NCBI GenBank assembly: GCA_900088475.1
Contig: FLMG01002572.1
Location: 1 to 40,775 of the forward strand
Direction of reading: 5' to 3'
Source of the DNA: Hyphochytrium catenoides
Lineage: Eukaryota > Protista > Hyphochytriomycota
Length of the DNA: 40,775 nucleotides
The translations under genes and the position numbers were made by a program. The notes below the pieces were generated by a model. That model worked only from the letters and a program-made list of their open reading frames with translations, had not been told where the DNA came from and did no database searches. Below, in pieces: positions 7,227-40,775 of the stretch (the stretch's first letter is position 1; each line of letters opens with the position of its first letter).

Positions 7227-7699
7227 TTGCTGGAGCTAAACACATCGCTGTACCGAAAATACATCATCAGGGCAAGAGAAGGGGCACGGACTATCTTCCA
7301 ATTTCTAGAGGGCCAGTCTCTTCCGTTACAAGGCAGTTGGAGGGTATGGCGGCGAAGGATTGGACCCACAGACTTGGTATGGATGGTGGAACTCTTTGAA
7401 GTTAACAATTTTTATTTTACCGCCAGACAGATTAACGTTAAAGGCCGTATACCTGGCGCACGAGATATAGACCCCAGAACCATATGGGAAGGTTAGCCAG
7501 AGTGGCAAGAGATAGTGGAGGGCGATAAACAGAGTTTCAACGAGGTACACCGACCAAGGTATAATAAATATGGATTTGGTCCAAATGGGCGAAACAGAGT
7601 ATTTGTGAGAAAGGAGGGGGATGAAGACGAGGCCGAAGAACAGCAAGACAGAGAGCATGGGACACAACAGACCCCAAAAAGCCTTTCCGGAAAATTTTC
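7227..7699 (+). pseudogene. Possible decayed intronless ORF (TE or viral relic?), unassigned
   Basis: ORFs 7227-7496 and 7515-7699 are in the same frame, separated by a single TAG (..RTIWEG*PEWQEIVEGD..); the frame runs into the N-gap; no family recognised. Confidence 0.25.
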
Positions 7700-7712
7700 N
7701 NNNNNNNNNNNN
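7700..7712. other. Assembly gap (13 N)
   Basis: Run of n characters. Confidence 1.
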
Positions 7713-7912
7713 CTGTCTCGTTCAACCCTCTGTGAGTTCCCCATTCTCTCTGTTCCCTGGTTCGGCTTGAAGAAGCGCCCTCCTGACAGCGCCCAAGCAC
7801 CCAAGCACGTCAAAAAGAGGCAGCACATTGAGGGCGGGGGGACGAGCGGCGAGCAAGACAGAGAAAGGGAAAGAAGGGGAGGAAGAGAAGGTTACAAACT
7901 GCTGGCATAAAA

Positions 7913-8640: not shown

Positions 8641-11600
8641 ATGGGGAAAGCCTCCGGCCCAATAATGCCAAAGTGTCCCGGAGCTGTCTTCGCAAGGCTC
8701 CCCGCCTATAATCCTTTCGTGGGGACCTTTCACCATGCCCCAAGGTACAACCTGTCCCTCTCTCCTCCCCAACCCCGCGTCTTACTGTCCGATGGTCTTC
8801 TGCACGGCTAGTGTCCAATCTCTCTTGCTCTGTCTCCGCGCTCTCGGGTCTCAAAGTTCCTTGAGGCTTAACTCCTCTTGGTCCCCATTGTCGGACCCTT
8901 CCGCGATGCTTGTCTTCTTCTAATCATCATCTTTCTGTCTAGTGCTGGCAATAGGAGCGCAGTCTACTTCGCGGGGGAGCTTGTAACAACGGACGAGCTA
9001 GAACAGCGAAAGAAGTTCAAGCATCATCCACTGACTGGCACCTTCCACACCCTGCCTGGCTTCTATGACCCTCTGCACCATGTGTGGCGGATTGGCATGG
9101 CCGAAGCCGCAGGAGGAGGCGCTGCAGGAGGCAAAGATGTCCACGAAGTAAATGATAAGCTCACTAGCAGTCTTATGAGACAGCATGACCTCCTCTCACA
9201 AAGCAAGAAGTCTGATGCAGGGCTGGATAAAGGGGGCACAGCGCCTGGCTTAGCAGGCTTGACGGCAATGGTGAGCTTTGTCCGCTTGCTCTCGCTTTCC
9301 ATTGGCCTTCGCTCTCGATCCTCTCCTCTTCCTTGGATCTAGCGAGCCAGAAAGCTCTCATCTTACTCGTTACGATCTTAGACTGTCGAAGCTCTTTCCT
9401 TCTTCCCCATCACCTGCTCCGTATCTCATCGTTCTGCTGTTCTGTGCACATGTGTCCACGTTGAACTCTAAGTCGAGTTGCTATGGTTCGTAGGTTGAAG
9501 ATGACCTAACTTCAGACGAGAGTCAAGACCTCGAGAGCAGGCCTATGACGGACGGAGAAGCTCAATCCCTCTCTGTATGCTCCTCAGATGCAAGTTCGTT
9601 GGCCTTGTCAATGTCAGAGTCCGACGAAGAGGCCATCGAGCCGGTAGATCAGAAGGACCTAGAAAAGGATGTTTCGCTGTTGAGAGGGAGACGTTTCAGT
9701 GATCCTCTGATAGTCAGGGCGACCTCTCTTTCTCCCCCACCTGTCAAATATGCTATGAGAAGGGCCTCTTCACTTCTTGCGGCACCCAGTCTCTACGCAG
9801 AGAAACCTTACCCTGACGGTTTTGTCCTTGAAAAGGCGGCGTTTCGCCCTTCCGACCCTTTGTCTGCTCCTCCGCCACCTCCGGCCAGGAGGAGACCTCC
9901 GCCGACGCAGCCACTAGCGAAAGTCCAAGGTTCAGGAGGTACGTAGAGTAGGCCTGCTCTGTGACGTATGGCTTTTCCCCTTCATGTCCTTTGTTGCGGT
10001 CTGTGATGCTCTTGTCCCTGTTGGCTTGTGCTCTGTCTTCCATAGACTACTCAGCTCAGATGCTATTGGTCCCTTCTGACCTTTGTTCTGATTTTTCGCT
10101 CAATAACAATAGAAAAGCAGAGGACCCGCCTGAATAGCACTGCAGGAGCAGCATACAGCAATGGAACTCGAGCATATCGGGATATTCCCGGAAATGAAGG
10201 GATGCATATAGAGACAACCGTGCCCTCTCCAATCTTAAGGGCTAGGACAAAGAGCGAGCTATCCAGTTCGCCTTCCCTTAGGAGACGGGTCTCAGCAGAA
10301 AATCTTCCTCTAAATAAGGCCTCCCAGCCACTATTTATGGTCTCCCGCCGTCCGTCATGGATCGCTGATGGCTCCCCAGATCTCGTTCTGAACGCCGCAG
10401 ACTACGGAGATGAAGCTGAATTATATGACGCGCTAGAGGTAAGACTCACCCGCCAATGAACTCTAGACAATCACATGGGCTAAGAATCACCTTTTTCTTT
10501 GACTTATCTACCTATCGACGTATCTACCCGTATAGGGGGCTGGCTATATCTCCACAGGTCACGGCTCCTTTCAACGAGTGACACGGTCTGACCAGGAGAG
10601 TGCCTCTTCTCGTCTAAAGAGGGCTAGCAGATCTGAGGCCGGAAGATCTGACCCTGGAACTCGCTTGAGTGATGAGCAGGAGCCTCCTGCGCGGGCGCTG
10701 GCATTGCACCGCTCTTCGAGCACTCCTGCGGGAGGCGCTGTAAGGAGTGCGATGCGGGATGGTAGATCTACCTCTCCTATCAGAGAGTATAGCCAGGGTG
10801 CGCCGCAATTGCCATCAAATCCCTTCATCATCCGTCGAATGTACGACACTAGCGAGATCAGGTAATGACCCCAAATTCAGTCAGTTATGCCGTAGAACAC
10901 CAAGGGCTAACACACTTCGTGCTGGACTTCTTGCTCGTTTGATCTCTTTACGTAGCGCTCTCCCTTTGGGGCAGACCTTTCAACCACCGTCTGCGCTTCT
11001 GGTTAATGACCATGAGGTCACCCATTCCAGCGCTCTGCCACCTTCACCCAGGAGGCGGAGCGCCAGTGCCACAGCTGAGATGCGTCCGTACTTCATTCAT
11101 GAAGTGGCAGTCACGCGCGGTTATGACATAGAGCCAGGGGATGGTACACTAGGAGACGGCAGCTATGCGGTGGTACAACCTGCAGTAAGGAAGAGTAACG
11201 GGCTGAAAGTGGCCATAAAGCAGGTGCACAAGAAGTATCTATTAAACGACGAGGAAAAGGCTGCAGTGAGAAGAGAGGTAGAGATCCATCAGAGATTGAG
11301 ACACAAGCACATTGTCAGGCTGTATGAGGTCTATGAGACGCAAGAGTACCTCTATCTGGTGAGTTTGCCCTTTTGACCGCTTCCCTTCTTTGCCATCATT
11401 TCTAGTTCCGTAGCTGCATGAGACTAACTCAAACATCTGTGTATACTTGTCGCCCTTAGGTCATGGAGCTAGCTTCTAGAGGCACGCTGGAATCCGTTTT
11501 AAGGCGACATCGACGTTTCCCGGAGTCTTTTGCACGCAGGGTCGCTCAGCAGCTGATGAGGGCCGTGCTGCACCTACATGATCATGGTAAGCGCCTTCAG

Positions 11601-12648
11601 CTTCCCCCATCTTCCATCCATGGCTGCCGCGTCTTGTCTAGTTGAGACACTATTGAGGCAGATATCTCTCCACCCCACTCTCCTCAGACAACCTCTTCGT
11701 TCCTCTTATACGCTTCATCTTGCTGCCGCAATATCTGACGGCTGTCCAATCTTCCTTCAGGTGTGCTCCACTGCGATCTCAAGCCGCAGAACATTTTGCT
11801 GGCTGATCCGCCCCGACGGCCGGGCAGCCCTAACGTTCCCAGCGCATCTTATGACCTCATGGTAGGAAGTGCCCGCACCATACCTATCTTTCTTATGCTG
11901 AGTTGGTGCCTTTGGGTTCCCGCCCTCTTCTCCCTTGTTGGACGTGTCGTCGTGCTGTGTGAGTTGATAAATCAGCTGACTGTGTAGACCACTGACATCG
12001 CTTTTGATCCTCTGGGATGTCATACGATAGGAGGGAGATCTGCGCACACTAGATGTTAACTTGAAGCTCTGTGACTTTGGGCTGGCCAGAAAGGTGCCTG
12101 ATGTCCGCTTCTATAAGATCACAGGGGATGTGCATAAGGTACGCACTTATCAAAAATCTCTTGTCTATGGATGCCGCAGAATCCTACACTTCCGCCTAGC
12201 TGCTGCCGCCATAGCGATCAACTTCGTTTTGACCCTGTCACTCTCCACCCCGTCACCGTCTTGGGCTGCTTGACCTTAGCTTAGAGGGATCGACAATCTT
12301 ACGTGTCTGACACTCCTTGGTCGGTTCCTCTAGGTGCCATTCACTGGTGTTACGGGCACTCCGGGATACATTGCCCCAGAGCTAATGTTACGCCAGCCAT
12401 ATGGCAAGCCAGCAGATATGTGGAGTCTCGGCATCATACTTTATGAGATGCTTGTGGGATACACGCCCTTCTACCCTCCTCACGCTTGCCTGGAAGAAGC
12501 TGTGGTTTTTGACTCGAGGGCCTGGAAAGGCATAAGCGATGACGCACAGGATTTAATTCTTCATATGCTGGACCCAGACCCCGAGACTCGCTACACTGTG
12601 CATCAAGCCTTTACGCACAGTTGGTTTGAGTTAGCTTTCTCCTTCTAA
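8641..12648 (+). CDS. CAMK-group Ser/Thr protein kinase (non-RD, HCD) with long low-complexity N-terminus, ~856 aa, 10 exons; start codon uncertain
   Basis: Exons 8641-8744, 8955-9270, 9494-9938, 10113-10438, 10536-10861, 10956-11358, 11460-11586, 11761-11861, 12031-12138, 12334-12648 join in phase. Motifs [99 protein letters not shown]. Confidence 0.92.
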
Positions 12649-14117: not shown

Positions 14118-17100
14118 CTAGAGGGAAAAGCGCTCCTGCAAAGCGCTTCTTCCCTGCTCTTCTCCTGTCCCATAGTTTTCCGCCACTGCTACGTCCACTG
14201 ACTTCGACAAGTTGGCATTATAGTAAAGGAAATGATGGTACTGGAAGTAAGCCAAGATCTCGACGAAGCCAACGTCACTGCTTTGCTCCTCGTTTCCTCC
14301 TTCGTCGCTTTCTCCTTCCATCATGGTCGCCGACCTCAGCACTGTGATATTCTTCTCGTGGGTTGGTCTTACCTCCCCTAAGGTCAAACCTACTACCTGT
14401 GGTGTCTCTCCCTGCGACTGAGACACCGCTGGAGAGGAAGGATTGGGTTCCGATGGGGCGACGTAGGACTTCCTCTTTTTTAGGAGCTCCACTTCCTTTT
14501 TGTGGAACGCTTCCGCCGCAATCTTACCGTCCTCGGCAGTGAGCTTGTTCTTCTTTTTCGCTGCTGCTTCCTGCTCAGGCGCATGACAGAAGCAGTGGGA
14601 TTAGCCACCGATCACAGGAAGAATTTTAAAGCGATGAGTCCGTCCGTGCGCGTAGAAGTGCTTCAAGGCAGAAGAGCATAAATGGACGAGCCACTGAAGA
14701 CGCACTCTCTACCCAGAAAAGATGTGGGGAAGAGAACCGAAGCATATCCTACCCTTTGTGCTTGTCTAAAGGCATCAATGCCTCGATCCAAGGCCTTCAC
14801 AAGAGAGAGTATCATATTGTTGGAAGATCCACGGTTCTTCAGACTCCATCCATCCTCCTAGAGCAACCATAACGCGATCGGTTGACATAGGAAGATGGAA
14901 GTCAGTCTGAGCTATAGTAGCCCACGGGGGGGCCACACTTCGTTGAACATCCAAGGCTTATGTTCCTATCCTGCGGTAGTCAACCCACTGTCTGGAGCTC
15001 TCCCCGTAGGGGCATGGTAGCCCCTCATCAAACCCATCGTCTTCTCCTCTCTCACATTAGGCTTCTATCTCGTTTGGTCATGAAACCTTTGGTGCCCTCC
15101 TGCTTGCCTGTCCCCTTTTTGCTCCTCTATCGCCCTTAGTCCTTACAGTTATTAGAGTCGCACCTTGAGAAATATCTTGAGCATGCAGCTTTCGTAGCCT
15201 TCACTCTTCGGTGGAAAGGCATGCACAACATCTTGGGCGTACATAATGTTCAGCAGCTGCGGAGTGCGGTAAAGTAGGCGCATTCGTGCGGCAAACCTAA
15301 GGCCCAGAAGGGTTAGGCAACACCAAGAGGGTCATCAGCAACTAGACAAAGAGGTAGTTTAAGGACCACCGGAAGGGGAAGTGAAGGTTCACTATGACAG
15401 TCGATCGGTATCCGTTGGACTAACTAAGTAAAGGTAGGCATAAGAAAGAGAAGCCGCCTAGAAGGGGTGTGAAGGACGTCAGCTACGAACCAAAATTAGC
15501 GAGCTTAAGAATGGAGGCACCTGAAGAAAGTTACTCACCCGGCATCACCAGCCTTGGGGGTCCCGAAGCCCACGACAGTAATCTTGTCAGTGGAAAGCCC
15601 CATTGACTTGACCTCATCCCCAAGCTTGAGAGCAAGCACTTGAGATAGCATTCCACCCATCGAGTACCCGGTAATATGGATTGGGGTACCCTCCTTCACA
15701 TACGACAAGAGAAGCGAGAGAAGGCCTTCTTCCATCATGTCTTGGAAATACTTATATACTGTCTCATGAACCCGCACAGTCTTGGCTTTCTCAATAACCT
15801 CTGGAGGGGCGGATGGAGCTTTCAGGGAGACAGAAGCAGGGTAAGTTCTTTATCTACCACCACTCCCGCTATCATGCCCTTCTAAAGGTCACCACACAGG
15901 TCTTTGGACAGGTAAAGAGTAGCCTGGATGGCATGACATGGGTCTCTCAGGCTCCAGACGGTAAATTTTTAAGGCGGAATACGAAAAGAAGCTGGAGAAA
16001 GCTGAGACAGAGAGGAGGCTCACCATCCTGCGCAATACGGTCCACGGGTTGCAAGTCCATAAACTCTGTAAGCCGTCTGTTCAAACCCATACTCCACATA
16101 TTCTCAAAAGACTGTCGAATGCGAGTTCTTTCGCCATCAGTCCAAGCTTTGGAAAGAGGCCGCCAAATCTGATCGAACAGAGCTGTAGCAGTCTGCCAGT
16201 CGCCTTAGATTGTGTAGAGGGAAAAGGCAGAGGAGGGATGAGCCAGGCCGCATAACATGGGAAAGGGACGTTATAGGAATGCTAGTCCATACACCAAAGA
16301 ACTTAGGTAACTTCATAAAAGCGTACCTGTCAGCGGAGCGGAGACAACTTCTAGAGTAGAGGTCCACGATAAATTCTTAAAGTCTGACATCATCTAATGG
16401 ACCAAGGCGTTGGCGTCAAAAAGGTCCTTAAAGCCCCTTCAACGATCAAGTAACCATTCTTCCCTCTATCTCCTCGATCGTCCTCCCTACCACGTTCCTC
16501 ATTGCCAAACAGAATTTATCTCCTAGCTCAGAACCCTCCCCTAGCCCGAACACTCATCATTTTCGCCATGGCATCTCCCTGGGTCTTACCTGTCTGAACT
16601 CCTCATCAGCCCAACCCGACCAGAAATCTCCCCAGAACTCCTTGATAGTGTCAGGTGTACCAGCGGGACTCAGGACCACCAGGACCTGAAGCAACCAACA
16701 AGCCTTTACTTAGTCTACTTAGTGGGTTCAGTATGTAGGCGGGGACAGAAACCCCACACGCACAACAAATAGAGCGGAAGCATATGTACCTCTCGCTTTG
16801 AACTCCCTTCAACAGTCTCCCAGACGTTGCACCTAAGGAAGCGTGAGAGCATTGATAGAAGGAGAAGGTAAGGCATTTACAAATGGGGTCGAATGAGAAT
16901 AACGCCGCGATCAACAATGTAAAGGTTCCCGATACCTGGCGCTATGGCTTGTGTTCTTGAATATGGCCTTCAAGTTATATGTCAAGCCGTTGGGGTCTCG
17001 CCTGTTCGGCTTCACCTTCACTCCTAACGAACATAGAAAGCCGTAAGCCGTAATCGTAATAGGAGCAGGGTCGTTTAACAGCGTCCGCAGCGCCTCATGA

Positions 17101-19571
17101 AAATGATCAGGGTCAAGTGGCAAAGACAAAAGTGAGGACCCTCATTAGCATGTGACCGTACCAACGTCCCACAGTACGTTTCTGTTGCCATCAGCATCCT
17201 CGTTGAGCACATCATTTTCCTTCATCTACGAGGAAAGGGTTAGCTGAGACTGTTCCTTCCTGCTCTAACCCCTCTCTCCTGTTATGGTACCATTCTCCTA
17301 GTTGTACATACACCGGGACTACTTTGGCGGCTGCCGACTTATCTGATAGCGTGTAAGACCTCCACAAGTTCCATCGGCTTACCATTGAAAACTTGGCTGA
17401 TAGGAGGAGTAGAGGCTTTGAGCTTCGAAGTATCTGATTGCCGTAGACAAAGTCCTTGTGCCTTCTAATCAGCAAAGTCGATACCTCTTTCTATTGATAG
17501 CACATGGATTAGAGGAAGATCATGGTGAAGGGTTCAACTCCAATCATCAGCAGTGGCAATTCGAGAGCTGAAGGCCTCCAATTAGTTAGTCGAGCTTTGT
17601 CTAGGGCTTCTGGATACCTCGAAAGCCCCAATAACGTCTAGATCTTGGGTCACAGGTGTCCTAAGCTCAATCTCCTCTCGTACAGTGACGAGCACATATC
17701 TGCCGCACAGGACGGACATTAGTTCGAAAGCAGGATCGAAGACCCGTGCTAGAATCGTACTTACCTCTGGGCGCCTTGCACGTCTGCCAGCGTAACATGT
17801 ACTCCGTATTGCTCTTGTTGTTGGTGGGCCAGTCGAATGGCACTCGACGGGTTAAGGCCTCTCCCGTGTCTAATGGTAATTATGAAAGCACCTGGGCACC
17901 AATCCTTCTTTAGACGGCGAAGGATTCCTGGCGTTTTAAGGAACATTACACCTATATTGAGAGGTATGTCAATGTGTGCCTCAGGAAAAGTGGGTTGGGA
18001 TAGATGGCTTCAAGAATAGCACGAGTCGGGGGAAACAGGATGAGAAGGGACAAAGAGGGAGAGAAAGGACATTGGGTGCAGACGCAGACGCTAGAGCAGA
18101 AACCCCGGTCAGCAAAGACTTCAAGAGAGGCAAGCTTGAGACGGGGAGGTCATTTAAGCGACAAGAGCTGAACACCTACCCTTATTATCGTCCTTGTCAA
18201 GGCTCAACTTCCTCCTGGATCTCGGCACGAAGTGATCGCTGACCAATGCCCCCAGAAACAGAAGGGCATGATGTCTGACGGGGGACAGAGCACGGCAACA
18301 TGCACGGAGGAGAAAGAGATATTCCTCCACCGTGAAAAAAGGAATAGGTAGGATGAACTCCTGTGCCGCCTTGGATTCGTCTAGTAGGCCTTTAACAATA
18401 CTCATATGCCTGCTCTCCGCCTTTGAGCCACTAACAATTGCGTTGATTTCCTCCTGCATGATCAGCGTTATCGGCAGGATGGATAAAGTCAGAGGAAAAG
18501 CCGGTAGTGAGGATTGAGCTTTTGAGGTAACAGGAACGTAGGGACAGCATGGAGAGGAGGTCGCAAAATGAACCAGGAAAAGGCGAACTAGAACTTCCAG
18601 CTCTCCCCGCGGCCGCTCAAAAGGTGTAGTCCTTCACTCACGTGTAGTCGTTCTGCCCAGTTCTTGTTCCTGAAGAAGGTGCTGACATGGCGAAGAAAGG
18701 GTTGAATGGACTCTTGGCGATGGAGATAGATCACCTAATCGACAAAGAATTTAGGGTCCCCCCTTGTTGCAGGAACCATGCCTCTGTCCTTCTTTTGACA
18801 TAACTTCTCTGTCTTCAACCCTGCTTCCCATCTAGCACTGTTCCCTTTGCCCCTCCCCCTTCGATGCGACAACACGCCGGGTCCTCCTTCTTTTGCACCT
18901 CTATAATTTCCTCTTCATCTTCTGCGCTGATCCAACTTCTCTCGTGTCTCATGGATGGAAAGGCTACACCACCCTATAATACATACCGCATAATTGTTTC
19001 TGACAAGATTTTCTGTGAAGGCCGCGGGCCGATTCCCGTTAGACCTTCCTTCAACCCACTTGCTAAGCTCGTCGTTCAGAGGGACTACGGTGCACCCAGC
19101 TGTAACTAACGCTAGACGTCGCCTACCAATATTGCGCTCAACGAAGGCCTGACCGACGAACGTGTAGAAAGGGTCAGTGATAAGGGCTTAGCACAAGCAC
19201 GCAGGAAAGATATACAATAGAACAAAGGATGTAGCCCAGAGCCACGTAGGTAACGAAGATCGGCAGAGAGAGGGGATGGAAAGCTGCCGGACCACCAGTG
19301 AGACGAACATAAAAGGACTATCAAGCCCCCACCTCGCTTGGGAGCTTTAACAGCCAAAACCAGTGAACGAAGGGAAAGGGCTAACTCATGTTCTTCTAGA
19401 GACATTGGAGAGCACAAGTGGCGAACGCACCTTTAGTTTATCTTCAGTCTCACCCAAATTTGCCGGTGGGACACTTTTATCGAAGAACTTGTCAATGTAT
19501 TCATCGGTCGTGTGGTCAGCAGTGGCAGCCGAGTAACCGACACTCTTAACGATCGATTGCCAAAGCGACAT
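14118..19571 (-). CDS. Fusion protein: N-terminal degenerate phosphopantothenate-cysteine ligase (PPCS/CoaB)-like domain + C-terminal class-3 (fungal-type) lipase, ~845 aa, 17 exons
   Basis: Exons 19571-19431, 19148-18987, 18734-18642, 18453-18180, 17951-17765, 17699-17618, 17490-17383, 17225-17162, 17023-16936, 16832-16790, 16685-16590, 16393-16327, 16203-16024, 15800-15539, 15296-15164, 14857-14753, 14570-14118 sum to 2538 nt with no internal stop. PPCS-like: LALVTAGCTVVPL, YAVIYLHRQES.QPF.RH, IPFFTVEEYLFLLR, LFLGALVSDHFVP, DWCPGAFII, LIRRH. Lipase_3: VLVVLSPAGT..IKEF.GDF, VRVH, IHITGYSMGG, VVGFGTPKAGD..FA, NIMYAQDVVHAFPP..EGY, YFQYHHFLYY. Confidence 0.82.
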
Positions 19572-36546: not shown

Positions 36547-39500
36547 TTACTTCTTCTTCGCCTTCTTTGCAGCAGCTTTCTTTGCCTTCTTGGCTGCCTC
36601 TTCCTCTGCTAGTTTCCTTCTCTCTTCCTGCAGCTAAAGGAGCGAAGCGGTGTGTAGCTCATGAGAACAATCTGTAGAGTGCGTCTAGCGCTGTCGCACT
36701 TTTGCTAAAGAAAGAGAGAGAGGGAGAGGAAGGCTGATGATTGAATGAAGATGCCCACCTTGTATTCCTCCTTGTAAGCGGCTTTCAGCTTCATCAGCTC
36801 CTCTTCCACTGGTGTCAAGCGCTGAGAATCAACATTGGCCTTCTTCCCCTTGGACTTGAGGGGAGAGAAGGATGAGTAAGACTTCTTAACTTGTTCGTGA
36901 GAACTGGAAGGAGACGAAGTGCAGCACTGGCGACTTCACTTACTATGTGCTCCTCGAAGCCAGCGATGGCGTGCTGAAGCGCAGCGGTGAGTTCTTGGTG
37001 CTTGCTGCCATCAAAGCATTGGTACGCAGTTCCCTGGAGCACAGACAGTAGGAGACGAGAGTAACATGTCAAATTGGAGGCAGGGAAGAGACTGAGAGCC
37101 ATTTGTACGCTTTGTACGTTAAGCCAGGAGCGATAGAGAAAGAGGAACAATAGTCAACAAGAGCATGACATGGAAGGCTCCGAGAGAACCCTTCTTCCTT
37201 GACTAGTTGATCTTCTCAAGCTGTTGATCTCTTGTTACTTGCCTCGGCACCGCTTTCCGTCGCTGTGCTGGACTTCTGTGCCGTATAGGCAGGTATTAAG
37301 CCTTGCAGGTCAAGCTGCAAATAGAATGAGAGAATTGGACTGAGGCACTTCATCGCCTTGTCAACTAACTTCATCCCTCACCTCGCAACTAAGTTTGTCG
37401 CACAGCTCCTTAGCTTTAGCGAGGAGCTCAGAATTGGTTGGAAGAGCCTCTGCTTCCCTGATGGCTTCAGAAAGGCCAGAGATTGTGGACCTGAACTCCT
37501 GCCCTGAGGAAGAGAGAAGAAAATAGGATGGCTTAGAGAGAGAGGTCAAGACTCTGACGGACAAAGGTATGAGGTACCTCCCACAGGTATCTGGGAACAG
37601 ATAAGAAAATTTCCGTTCAGATAGATCTCCGCCTCTGCAGCTTCCAGAGTCTCTTCCGCCTTCCTTATCTCTTCCTCCTCCACTCCGCCCTCCCTAGCTG
37701 CCTGCAAGGCCGAGGAGACAAATGCCAGCCCAAAAGAGACCTGCAATGGCCTAGTGATGAAAGCAAGCGGGACATGACGACAGCCAGTCACCCATTAGCT
37801 GGAAGTATTAGACCGAAAGAGCACTACAAGTAGTCCAAGTCAACCTCGTTCTTCACTGACATAAGCGCGATTGTTGCTATGGCCATTGATGTGTCATAGG
37901 ATGTTTCTCTTTCTCTCTTCCCCTCTCTGTCTATCTCTGTGTCTGTCTCTCTGTGTCTCTCTTTCTGTCTCACTTTCGTCTGTCTCTCCCTCTACCAGCA
38001 TCCTCTTACTTGCTTTCGGCCATTCTTATGAATTCTACTGCTGTCATCTCTTCTTTCCTTTATCCAAGCACCCGTTTTCCTCACCTAATGCTCTCCAGAT
38101 CCTTCAACGCGGTCCGGAGTGCTGATTTTAGCGTGAGGCGCTTGAGAAAGATGCGCCCTTCGCTGATGAGCTCCACGTTTGCCCCAGCAGCCTGTGCGTC
38201 GATGAGCGCCTTCTCAAGAAGAGGAATGTCTTCTCCTTGGAGCTCTCCCAGGGCTTGGGCAGCAAGGGTAAGGATAAGTGAAGACTACGTGAGCACACGC
38301 GCGGGGAGCGACGCTTCAAGCGCGTAGAAGATCAGAAGAGATTAAGACCGAGAAGGCCGGTAACTCTTGGGCCTCAAGTCTTCTTCCCTTGTCAGCTTCC
38401 CCTCTTACTCCTCCCTCATTCTCATCTCCTTTCCTATCTCTCTCGCCCTCTATGTAAGCTTGGGACCCACGCTCTGATGCCTCTTTCATTCTCTCTCTCC
38501 TGTGGCCCTTGTAGCACGTGATGCTTACAGCTGGAGTCCTCTGGAGAGATCTTCATGGCAATGAGAAGCTCGCTCTCCGCCTTGTGGATAGTTTCGATGC
38601 ATTTCTTGCAGCAGCGAATGCGCTTGAAGAACGGAGACCCAGCCTCCTGAGGAATGTCAAACCTTCATCGTAGAGAAAGAGAGGGAAAGAAGGCAAAGCG
38701 ATAGAGTGACAGAAGAGACCATGCAGTCAGAGGTCAAAGTTGACGACGAGGCGCAGGCAAGAAATTTGAATAGAGTGACATGACAAATGGCAGACCCACA
38801 AACAACGGGCCAAGAGAAGGAACAGAAGAGAGATCAAAGTGGCAGGTCGTGCAACTGATAATGTCGCGTTTAAAAGGACATAACGAGCACGGCGAGAAGG
38901 CGGACGAAGCGCAGGTAATAGTTATGGGTGAGCTTCAGGGCAAGGTACCCGCACCAGAGACAGACAGCGCAAATATAGAGTGAGAAAAACCAGAAGAGAC
39001 GTGTTGCAGGCGTTACACCTACTGCTCGGTGCATTCCTGGGCAAAGAGGTTATTGCAGGAGTAGCAGAGAAAGCCTCTGGCTGAAGGAGTAAAGAGCCTG
39101 TGCGTCTCATTGCAGCGCTGCTGCCCTCCGATCTTAGATAGCAGCTCTCGCACGCGCTTGTCAGTGGCGAGCGCGATAGGAGGATTCCCATAAAGATTCT
39201 TTGAAGAAAGATCTAGGCCTTGAGATAGCAGGACCTGGAGGTAAGAGGTGCCACAAACAGACGTCGTATCAGAAGCAAGACCGCTCTCCTTTCCTTTCCC
39301 TTCTCTGTCTTTCTTTCTCTTTCCTCGGTCTTCTCTTTCTCTACCCATTTCCTCTCTCCCTCCATCAGTCCGTTCCTCTCGATTCCTATTCTGCTTTCTC
39401 TATTCCTTCCATGACTGGCCCTTGGAACGAAGGCTAAGGGCGATTCATGTCGCCTCCTTTCGTACTTCACCCTCGGTCTCCGTTCCCTTGTTAAGCTTCC

Positions 39501-39830
39501 GCTTTCGATATCGTGTTCTCATTCTCCCTTGTCCTCTCTTCCTCTCTTCTCACCTGCACTACTCCATAGTGGCCGTTTGCGCAGGCAAGATGTAGCGGAG
39601 TGTTGCCGCAGGAATCCTTCTTGTTGCAGGGGAAGCCCAGCTGCAGCAGCATCGAGACGATAGCCTCGTTGCCCTAGGGAGAGAAGGAAAGAGAGTAATA
39701 AGTAAGCTGAGAAGCACTCGTGTGGCAGCGGCAGGGTACATAAGTATTGACAGACAGTGGGGAGCGAGAGAGATGACGAGTGACGAGGATAGAACCAGGA
39801 AAAAGTACCCTCGTTTGTCTCATGCGCTAT

Positions 39831-39873
<43 letters not shown>

Positions 39874-40213
39874 CTCTCTCTGTGTGTCTCTCTGTGTGTC
39901 TCTCTGTCTCTCTCTCTGTGTCTCTCCCTCTTTCTCTCTCTCTCTCTGTCTCTCTCTGTCTCTCTCTCTCTCTCTCTCTCGCTCGATCTGTTCCGTTTCT
40001 CCTTCTTCTGCAATTGTGATCATTTGTTTCCCTTACGCAGTAGGCCGCAAGATGCATGGCCGTGGTTCTGGCATCATCACTGCTATTGTGCTCCACATCG
40101 TGAGTGCTATCTGAGCCTCCGTTCTGCAGGATAACCGAAGCAATCTGCATGATGGGACGACAGTAATATTTGAGAAGTCTGTGACCGTAACCAACTCTCT
40201 CTCTATCTCTATC

Positions 40214-40244
<31 letters not shown>

Positions 40245-40574
40245 CTCTCTCTCTTTCTCTCTCCGTCTCTCTGTCTCCCTCTCACTCCTTCTCTTGCGCT
40301 CTTTCTTTGGTTCTGGCGCACATCTCTTTCTCTCTCTCTCTCACTATCTATCGGAACTGTCGTCCTCATTTCTCTCTCCCCAACTTTCTGTTTTCGTCCT
40401 TTCCTCACTCCTTTGGGATTGCTCTTACTGCTGTGGAGTTCTTGGAGACGGCCCACATGAGGGGAGTCCACTCACTGCCTGGCTTTCTGAAATTGATGGG
40501 AGCGCCCATATCAATGAGATCCTCCACCCGAGCCAGATCTCCATTGTGCTTGCACAGGTATAAAAGCTCAGCCC
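36547..40574 (-). CDS. Ankyrin-repeat protein with degenerate FYVE-like zinc finger and C-terminal helical/coiled-coil, Lys/Ala-rich tail; 5' end lies beyond the window
   Basis: 12 exons in phase: GAPINFRKPGSEWTPLMWAV, TTAMHLAAYCGNEAIVSMLL..G, KDSCGNTPLHLACANGHYGVVQVLLSQG.D..SKNLYGNPPIALA; then RCNETHRLF..SARGFLCYSCNNLFAQEC..KRIRCCKKC; ends EEEAAKKAKKAAAKKAKKK* (TAA 36549-36547). Confidence 0.85.
37034..37242 (-). other. GC-AG spliceosomal intron in the ankyrin gene
   Basis: Donor GAG|GCAAGT; the only phase-0 donor that joins ..ESGAE to GTAYQCFDG..; nearby GT donors give stops. Confidence 0.7.
39833..39980. repeat. Compound (CT)n/(GT)n microsatellite in an intron
   Basis: Directly visible. 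Confidence 0.95.
40196..40345. repeat. Compound (CT)n/(ATCT)n microsatellite in an intron
   Basis: Directly visible. Confidence 0.9.
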
Positions 40575-40775
40575 CTGTTCAGAGAAAGAAAGAGACGTCA
40601 GAGAGAAAGAAGGGTGGTTTGTTGCCATGTGAATGTATGAGAGGTAAACGGATGAGGAGAACCACCACGTTTGGGCAGAGCCGAAGTGGTATGCGGTAGC
40701 TAGGGAGGGGAATTGAAGAGAGAGGGAGAGGCAAAAAAAGAGAAGAGAGAGAGAGAGACAAAGAGAGAAGGAGAA

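Follow-up and report, generated by a model that had tools for sequence, protein, structure and literature searches.

Among the enzymes of coenzyme A (CoA) biosynthesis, derived pseudoenzymes are known for pantothenate kinase (PanK), as in PANK4, and moonlighting paralogues for PPCDC, as in yeast Hal3 and Vhs3. The closest functional analogy to the gene described here is PANK4, in which a pseudo-pantothenate kinase is fused to an active DUF89 phosphatase, an arrangement conserved in a wide clade (PMC9352595). The case added here concerns phosphopantothenoylcysteine synthetase (PPCS), and was found on contig FLMG01002572.1 of Hyphochytrium catenoides (GenBank assembly GCA_900088475.1; the whole stretch analyzed, 40,775 nucleotides of intron-rich, eukaryotic DNA with about 50% G+C, is called the window). 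A gene on its reverse strand encoded a PPCS-like N-terminal domain (N-domain) that had lost most active-site motifs, joined to a lipase. This domain (amino acids 1-349) is read as a non-catalytic, PPCS-derived N-terminal module of an 845-residue class-3 lipase with an intact Ser-Asp-His triad, at a probability of about 0.8.

PPCS enzymes are obligate dimers (PMC12985681, a 2026 study of the Plasmodium PPCS heteromer). In prokaryotic, eukaryotic and apicomplexan PPCS alike, Asn59 shows strict conservation and is important for catalysis; Asp183 serves as the metal ligand, 4'-phosphopantothenate is bound by Arg55, Ala179 and Ala180, and the nucleotide site of the eukaryotic enzymes is marked by Ser198', Lys231 and Pro211-Lys212 (PMC12985681). 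The literature searched yielded no description of a PPCS-fold pseudoenzyme, of a PPCS-lipase fusion or of the locus tags of the family; the member proteins themselves are already in public databases.

Motif loss in a PPCS-derived domain

The gene model was built from homology anchors (the contig L001 and the protein P0134, both described below) and GT-AG sites, and comprised the following parts:

14118..19571, reverse strand: whole fusion gene, 17 exons and 16 introns, coding sequence of 2538 nt, 845 amino acids, PPCS-like N-domain followed by a class-3 lipase
17383..19571, reverse strand: PPCS-like (DFP-fold) putative pseudoenzyme domain, exons 1-7, amino acids 1-349, assigned by homology, motif loss and tree
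14118..17225, reverse strand: class-3 lipase part, exons 8-17, assigned by Pfam Lipase_3 on exon 14, the triad and the fold of an orthologue
19571-19431; 19148-18987; 18734-18642; 18453-18180, reverse strand: exons E1-E4
17951-17765; 17699-17618; 17490-17383; 17225-17162, reverse strand: exons E5-E8
17023-16936; 16832-16790; 16685-16590; 16393-16327, reverse strand: exons E9-E12
16203-16024; 15800-15539; 15296-15164; 14857-14753; 14570-14118, reverse strand: exons E13-E17

The joined, spliced model was assembled from the window sequence and used for alignment, for BLAST against fetched proteins and for trees, and single exons were used for structure and database searches. Against solved structures, exon 4 (18181-18453, reverse strand) matched yeast Cab2 (6ai8, E 5e-7) and human PPCS (1p9o, E 1.7e-6), exon 2 matched yeast Cab2 (E 2e-3) and exon 5 human PPCS (E 0.07). 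The replacements detailed below were already visible in these alignments. The spliced N-domain aligned with canonical PPCS proteins over about 285 residues (E 5e-44) with 30-35% identity. No match was obtained in a Pfam scan of single N-domain exons; the orthologue P0134 matched DFP at E 1.6e-12. An ESM Atlas feature search with exon 4 gave weak DFP leads and nothing stronger, a phmmer search with the same exon found no near orthologue among 1.84 billion representatives, and a profile search seeded with P0003 and the window exons returned canonical PPCS only, among the 120 matches listed.

Two repetitive proteins, P0001 (961 amino acids) and P0002 (1699 amino acids), obtained the best phmmer scores, above all true PPCS. 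They matched residues ~31-72 of exon 4 (LFLLRACCRAL...) in 16-17 stretches, and were set aside as compositional or repeat matches rather than kin.

For motif scoring, the model was aligned with 61 full-length PPCS representatives from the exon-4 phmmer search, and 41 motif positions were conserved at 85% or more. The window kept 17 of these 41 positions (41%), against at least 83% in each of the 61 representatives, the lowest-scoring of which look truncated or mis-predicted. The replacements were distributed over the whole domain:

19089..19106, reverse strand: VTAGCT replacing the nucleotide-phosphate loop VTSGGT (Ser41 to Ala, Gly43 to Cys)
19026..19064, reverse strand: SKWVEGRSNGNRP replacing VRF(I/L)DNFS.G.RG (Arg55 to Lys, Asp58 to Glu, Asn59 to Gly, Phe60 to Arg, Gly66 to Pro)
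18232..18258, reverse strand: FLGALVSDH replacing YLAAAVSDF (Ala180 to Leu, Phe184 to His; metal-ligand Asp183 kept)
18181..18222, reverse strand: RSRRKLSLDKDDNK, the loop in place of the HKIQS segment, motif unrecognizable
17926..17934, reverse strand: TPG replacing nucleotide motif II, VPK (Lys212 to Gly; Asn in the rest of the family)
17857..17877, reverse strand: TIRHGRG replacing SFKLETD (Lys231 to Arg, Glu233 and Thr234 lost, two-residue insertion)
17776..17793, reverse strand: TLADVQ replacing VVANLL (Asn to Asp)

The Asn59 column held Gly in the window and Asn in 51/52 and 15/15 canonical sequences. The 4'-phosphopantothenate-binding residues Arg55, Ala179 and Ala180 were Lys, Ala and Leu, respectively, Ala180 being invariant in all 61 representatives. 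Glu48, the Glu of PLE, was replaced by Asn (PLN) in the window, against Glu in 50/50 representatives, and Gly43 was present in 48/48 of them. Overall, only Asp183, Ala179 and Pro211 were retained of the eight residues with published roles. The occupant of the Lys195 column depended on the alignment, one placing the Lys of 'DKDDN' there and another leaving a gap. Lys195 of the HKIQS loop is presumably the counterpart of Lys289 of E. coli CoaB, from which its role is taken.

The first-pass annotation of this DNA had proposed, against the eukaryotic PPCS consensus, that most PPCS active-site motifs were lost, and the scoring above bears this out. The individual changes that it listed, from VTSGGT, the Asn-to-Gly and last Gly-to-Pro changes of SKWVEGRSNGNRP and YLAAAVSDF to VPK, SFKLETD and the ANLL-type motif (its ADVQ lying in TLADVQ), were all present in the alignments. 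Its statement that HKIQS is absent agrees with the unrecognizable motif, a Lys occupying the Lys195 column in one alignment only, and the open, well-spliced frame that it described was recovered with GT-AG introns. Its interval, 17765-19148, does consist of PPCS-like exons, but these are no more than exons 2-5 of a longer gene, in which the domain spans 19571 to 17383.

Fusion to a class-3 lipase across the oomycetes

A further result, absent from that annotation, is the place of the domain at the N-terminus of a conserved class-3 lipase, which holds the key to its likely role. A search with P0134 gathered 37 proteins of 595-976 amino acids, all with both domains. All named members were oomycetes (Lagenidium, Pythium, Globisporangium, Phytophthora, Nothophytophthora, Peronospora, Plasmopara, Aphanomyces, Saprolegnia and Achlya). 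An apicomplexan origin of the window, at first suggested by its composition and repeats, was discarded in view of this oomycete-only result. P0134 itself (842 amino acids) carried Pfam DFP and Lipase_3 and aligned with window pieces down to 14187. The fusion was a single uninterrupted open reading frame (ORF) in the two members checked, on contig L005 (P0134, 2529 nt) and in Saprolegnia parasitica (L006, P0287, 2568 nt), so it is real and no gene-prediction artefact. The window protein was 33-41% identical to every family member and about equally distant from all of them, which fits an outgroup lineage.

Members were annotated in databases as 'fungal lipase-type domain-containing protein' or 'lipase (class 3)'. 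Two of them, P0270 (JGI) and P0298 (Phytophthora ramorum, nr), were labelled 'phosphopantothenate-cysteine ligase' despite the lost catalytic residues of the family, and these ligase names are probably annotation errors.

The lipase part was identified by a Pfam Lipase_3 (PF01764) match on exon 14 (E 8.5e-8, 32.6 bits against a curated cut-off of 22) and by its catalytic triad:

15669-15652, reverse strand: nucleophile elbow GYSMGG, with Ser575
15238-15209, reverse strand: AQDVVHAFPP, with triad Asp638
14246-14220, reverse strand: FQYHHFLYY, with triad His807

All three residues were present in the window, and the Ser575, Asp638 and His807 columns were conserved in 36, 36 and 33 of 36 relatives, respectively. 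The most conserved surroundings included the block MKENDVLNEDADGN...SPAGTPDTI..WGDFWSGWA. The orthologous C-terminal half was predicted at moderate confidence (predicted local distance difference test, pLDDT, 64, with a core above 85), and its fold matched structures of feruloyl esterase A, Rhizomucor lipase, plant PLA1 and EDS1-type class-3 lipases. The very conserved 'linker' (amino acids 350-470) formed the N-terminal beta-strands of the predicted lipase fold. Between the lipase Asp and His, the family displayed a Cys/His-rich knuckle cluster with a median of 11 Cys, against a single Cys in the window; a count of 1 Cys was likewise seen in at least one member from the databases, so the cluster does not look obligatory for family membership. 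In its place, the window held a Lys/Glu/Ser-rich low-complexity stretch (14290-14570, reverse strand, amino acids ~696-790).

The model joining the two halves had GT-AG at all junctions and a reading frame open throughout, with good splice consensus in the N-domain exons and stops in the read-through frame of every intron. Its least certain boundaries were the E13/E14, E16 and E17 junctions. By tblastn, P0134, P0263, P0264 and P0287 tiled the window from 19151 to 14187 in order, colinear with family proteins of 842-855 amino acids. The halves meet across one further feature:

17491..17617, reverse strand: intron 6, holding an in-frame TAA at 17584-17582

Its donor (GAG|GTATCC) and acceptor (caatag|AAA) gave an exon 6/7 join without gaps against the family alignment. 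Retention of intron 6 would yield a 324-residue stand-alone PPCS-like protein ending at TAA 17582. A first model of six exons, corresponding to such a stand-alone protein of 324 amino acids, was dropped, as L001 and P0134 displayed conserved colinear exons past the stop.

L001, a Logan contig (SRR9302959) of 1579 bp (1.6 kb) encoding P0004, carried an intron-bearing orthologue from another organism. It was colinear with the window past the TAA, with the conserved blocks RRHKDFVYGNQILRSSKPLLLLSAKFSMVS, DVLNEDADGNRNVLWDVG and others in the same order. It shared two intron positions and phases with the window, and its conserved exons were spaced within 100-180 bp. Its PPCS-like domain was differently degenerate (TSGSV, VETIGSGNRGA, SAGLTKKY and VPH), with SFKLQTD and VVANL kept.

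Loss of catalytic residues extended to the whole family, as seen when 36 fusion N-domains were aligned jointly with the window and 15 canonical PPCS. None of the 36 fusion members had Arg at position 55 or Asn at position 59 (V, A, L, Q, S, C or T instead). Gly43 was A, S, P or V in 36/36, Glu48 was replaced (D, N or T) in 35/36, Ala180 was T or S in 34/36, Lys212 was Asn in 34/36, and an unrelated basic loop occupied the place of HKIQS. Other positions were kept, namely Gly42 (36/36), Asp58 (35/36), Gly66 (36/36), Ala179 (35/36), Asp183 as D or E (32/36), Pro211 (36/36) and Lys231 (33/36). The losses common to the whole family, in oomycetes and in an oomycete-like stramenopile, indicate that catalysis was given up in the common ancestor. 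Substitutions varied among Peronosporales/Pythiales, Saprolegniales, the P0134/P0263 pair, L001 and the window; being lineage-specific, they formed no new shared catalytic constellation. Such a pattern is to be expected once catalysis is abandoned and the fold kept. The window was more eroded than most members at Ser41, Asp58, Gly66, Phe184 and Lys231 and more canonical at Ser61, Gly63, Arg65 and Ser182, which points to independent drift.

Canonical PPCS with every motif occurred in oomycetes as separate proteins: P0162 (Saprolegnia diclina), P0169 (Achlya hypogyna, ACHHYP_02661) and P0241 (Aphanomyces euteiches). Canonical and fusion proteins were found in the same species in Achlya hypogyna (P0169 with P0288) and in Aphanomyces euteiches (P0241 with P0286/P0296). 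In an IQ-TREE phylogeny, 18 fusion N-domains, window included, were split from 20 canonical PPCS, oomycete ones included, with a Shimodaira-Hasegawa-like approximate likelihood ratio test (SH-aLRT) support of 99. The end branch of the window was long (2.2 against a median of 0.58), so that the tree supports its membership of the clade rather than an exact place within it.

The domain of the orthologue P0134 (residues 1-334) was predicted by AlphaFold2 from a 47-row alignment with a pLDDT of 90.5 and a predicted template-modelling score (pTM) of 0.90. Foldseek retrieved human PPCS 7edz first (E 1e-29, template-modelling (TM) scores of 0.79/0.86, root-mean-square deviation 2.2 A), followed by yeast Cab2, against a TM score of only about 0.5 for bacterial CoaB. 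These matches indicate that members of the family have kept a PPCS fold of the eukaryote type.

The N-domain was the fastest-evolving part of the protein, with 32% of positions conserved at 80% or more against about 50% in the rest. Tree length reached 11.5 for the N-domain against 7.2, and the window branch 1.92 against 0.93, for linker and lipase. At the 111 family-conserved N-domain positions the window was 50% identical and 75% similar, against 73% and 86% in the linker and 69% and 81% in the lipase core. Seven N-domain exons kept about 350 codons open and their splice sites intact, even though the end branch measured about two substitutions per site. From these sequence comparisons, the N-domain still looks selected rather than neutral.

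The N-terminus of the family, M-x-L-W-(G/Q) (window 19557-19571, reverse strand, amino acids 1-5), was 80-95% conserved family-wide, ahead of a low-confidence segment of the predicted structure (residues 1-6, pLDDT <50). It may be a targeting or modification signal.

At the 3' end of the fusion gene lay a convergent, multi-exon protein-kinase gene (window 8686-12636, forward strand). It was orthologous, with 55-89% identity per exon, to the kinase that directly follows the fusion gene on the contig of P0134 (L005, 5637-7484, reverse strand), and local gene order is thus conserved. Elsewhere in the window, an ORF translation at ~7515-7910 (forward strand) had a run of X, pointing to an assembly gap of N, and the right end (39500-40700) consisted of long simple repeats translating to ERE.../SLSL....

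Proposed role and alternative explanations

The N-domain descends from a eukaryotic PPCS, the fold being kept, as predicted on the orthologue. It has lost the residues for binding 4'-phosphopantothenate and for forming or resolving the acyl-nucleotide intermediate (Asn59), as well as nucleotide-holding elements (the second Gly of SGGT, Lys212 and the HKIQS loop), presumably leaving CoA synthesis to a separate canonical PPCS. The dead domain most likely serves the lipase as a dimerizing, regulatory or ligand-binding module, and would thereby control or localize lipase activity. Since PPCS are obligate dimers, a dimerization scaffold would be the simplest form of this role. A phosphate-bearing ligand may still bind through the retained T-x-G-x-T loop, Asp183 and the basic residue at 231. 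The first-pass annotation had suggested a fold maintained without ligase catalysis and reused for ligand binding or as a scaffold, and this suggestion is supported by the orthologue fold, the family-wide loss of catalytic residues, the signs of selection and the coexisting canonical PPCS of oomycetes.

Several points weigh against this interpretation. Asp183, Ala179, Pro211, Ser61, Gly63, Arg65 and a basic residue at 231 were kept, and by their sequence may allow some ligand binding or an unfamiliar chemistry. The fold was predicted on P0134 and not on the window's own, more eroded sequence, and coexisting canonical PPCS are known from related oomycetes, not from the genome of this organism. 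The exon 6/7 splice uniting both halves was placed by homology and splice consensus. Finally, the alignment of the fusion family revealed no new pocket motif common to all members, which would argue for a structural role.

A more specific role, unlikely as it stands, is that the dead domain senses a metabolite or nucleotide of the CoA pathway (4'-phosphopantothenate, 4'-phosphopantetheine, CoA or acyl-CoA, CTP or ATP), or pairs with a real PPCS, and so gates the lipase. If true, the release of fatty acids from lipid stores would be coupled to the capacity for acyl-CoA activation, by a PANK4-like regulatory device specific to oomycete-type stramenopiles.

Also unlikely is a heterodimer in which the dead domain partners canonical PPCS, tethering the lipase to the CoA-synthesis machinery or regulating that machinery. 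PPCS is dimeric with an active site built from both protomers, a PPCS heteromer is known in Plasmodium falciparum (PMC12985681), and the PPCS fold is retained in the family. Both P. falciparum subunits, however, keep all catalytic residues, unlike the window domain.

The fusion itself could be a splicing-model artefact, or one isoform, of two genes, a stand-alone 324-residue PPCS-like protein ending at TAA 17582 and a downstream lipase. The joining of the two halves was deduced from sequence, and exon 6 read through its donor meets an in-frame stop 324 codons from the start, which gives a protein of usual PPCS length. Two separate genes are nonetheless very unlikely: the donor and acceptor of intron 6 fit the family alignment gap-free, the C-terminal PPCS helix (LLIRRHKDF...) sits in exon 7, past the stop, both domains occur in 37 homologues, the two checked ones being single ORFs, and the exons of L001 follow one another at the short spacing given above.

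Neutral decay would make the PPCS-like part an unselected relic carried before a functional lipase. The rapid evolution of the N-domain agrees with this, both in the window branch (1.92 against 0.93) and in the share of well-conserved positions (32% against about 50%), and the window copy is among the most eroded of the family. A relic is nevertheless highly improbable given the ~350 codons open over seven exons with consensus splice sites, the 75% similarity at family-conserved positions, the full-length domain kept in 37/37 members across oomycetes and the orthologue domain predicted at pLDDT 90.

Although Asp183, Ala179 and Pro211 are retained along with parts of the Gly-rich loop, a Lys can be aligned near Lys195 and the search space for PPCS in this genome was the window alone, the domain is almost certainly not a working PPCS or related ligase with unusual residues, nor the only PPCS of the organism, as the strictly conserved Asn59 (PMC12985681) is Gly in the window and non-Asn in 36/36 relatives, the replacements are lineage-specific with no new shared catalytic set, and related oomycetes retain a separate canonical PPCS.

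Comparison with known systems

A PPCS-fold pseudoenzyme fused to a lipase that appears active from its sequence is conserved across oomycetes, among which are major pathogens of crops and fish. It is also conserved in one or more intron-rich relatives beyond the named groups. The fusion family offers a natural experiment on the PPCS fold without catalysis. In the set of proteins recovered it was lineage-restricted, and it may therefore deserve attention as a component of lipid metabolism peculiar to oomycetes. The ligase names of P0270 and P0298 could spread by automated annotation and distort reconstructions of CoA synthesis.

Compared with eukaryotic PPCS (human 1p9o/7edz, yeast Cab2 6ai8; Pfam DFP, PF04127), the window domain displayed homology along its full length (about 30-35% identity) and the same residues at Asp183, Ala179 and Pro211, and would, judging by the orthologue, share the eukaryote-type fold with its extra helical region. 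It differed by replacement of Asn59, Arg55, Ala180, Lys212, Gly43, Glu48, the HKIQS loop and Glu233/Thr234, by its position as the N-terminal domain of a lipase rather than a stand-alone enzyme of about 310 amino acids, and by its separate branch in the tree.

With the oomycete family, the window protein shared length, domain order, lipase triad, PPCS catalytic losses and N-domain grouping, and was colinear from M.LWG to the C-terminal ..YF..H.FLYYN.NL.KSV. Examples of this family are Phytophthora infestans PITG_05669, Saprolegnia parasitica SPRG_12558, Achlya hypogyna ACHHYP_03818 and Lagenidium giganteum N0F65_007175, all uncharacterized. The window gene differed in its 16 introns, the two checked members being intronless, and in being without the Cys/His-rich knuckle cluster.

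The parallel with PANK4 is one of functional analogy only, presumably with no homology. PANK4 belongs to the PanK step and carries a metal-dependent phosphatase, against an alpha/beta-hydrolase lipase here, and its hydrolase acts on a CoA intermediate, whereas the window lipase is so far without a link to CoA metabolites. The yeast PPCDC paralogues Hal3 and Vhs3 (PMC4626798) and PfPPCS1/PPCS2 (PMC12985681) resemble the window domain as CoA-pathway paralogues in non-standard roles, as heteromer subunits or regulators. Hal3 and Vhs3 still contribute PPCDC activity, and both PfPPCS subunits keep the full catalytic set, whereas the window domain has lost this set and is covalently fused to its presumed client.

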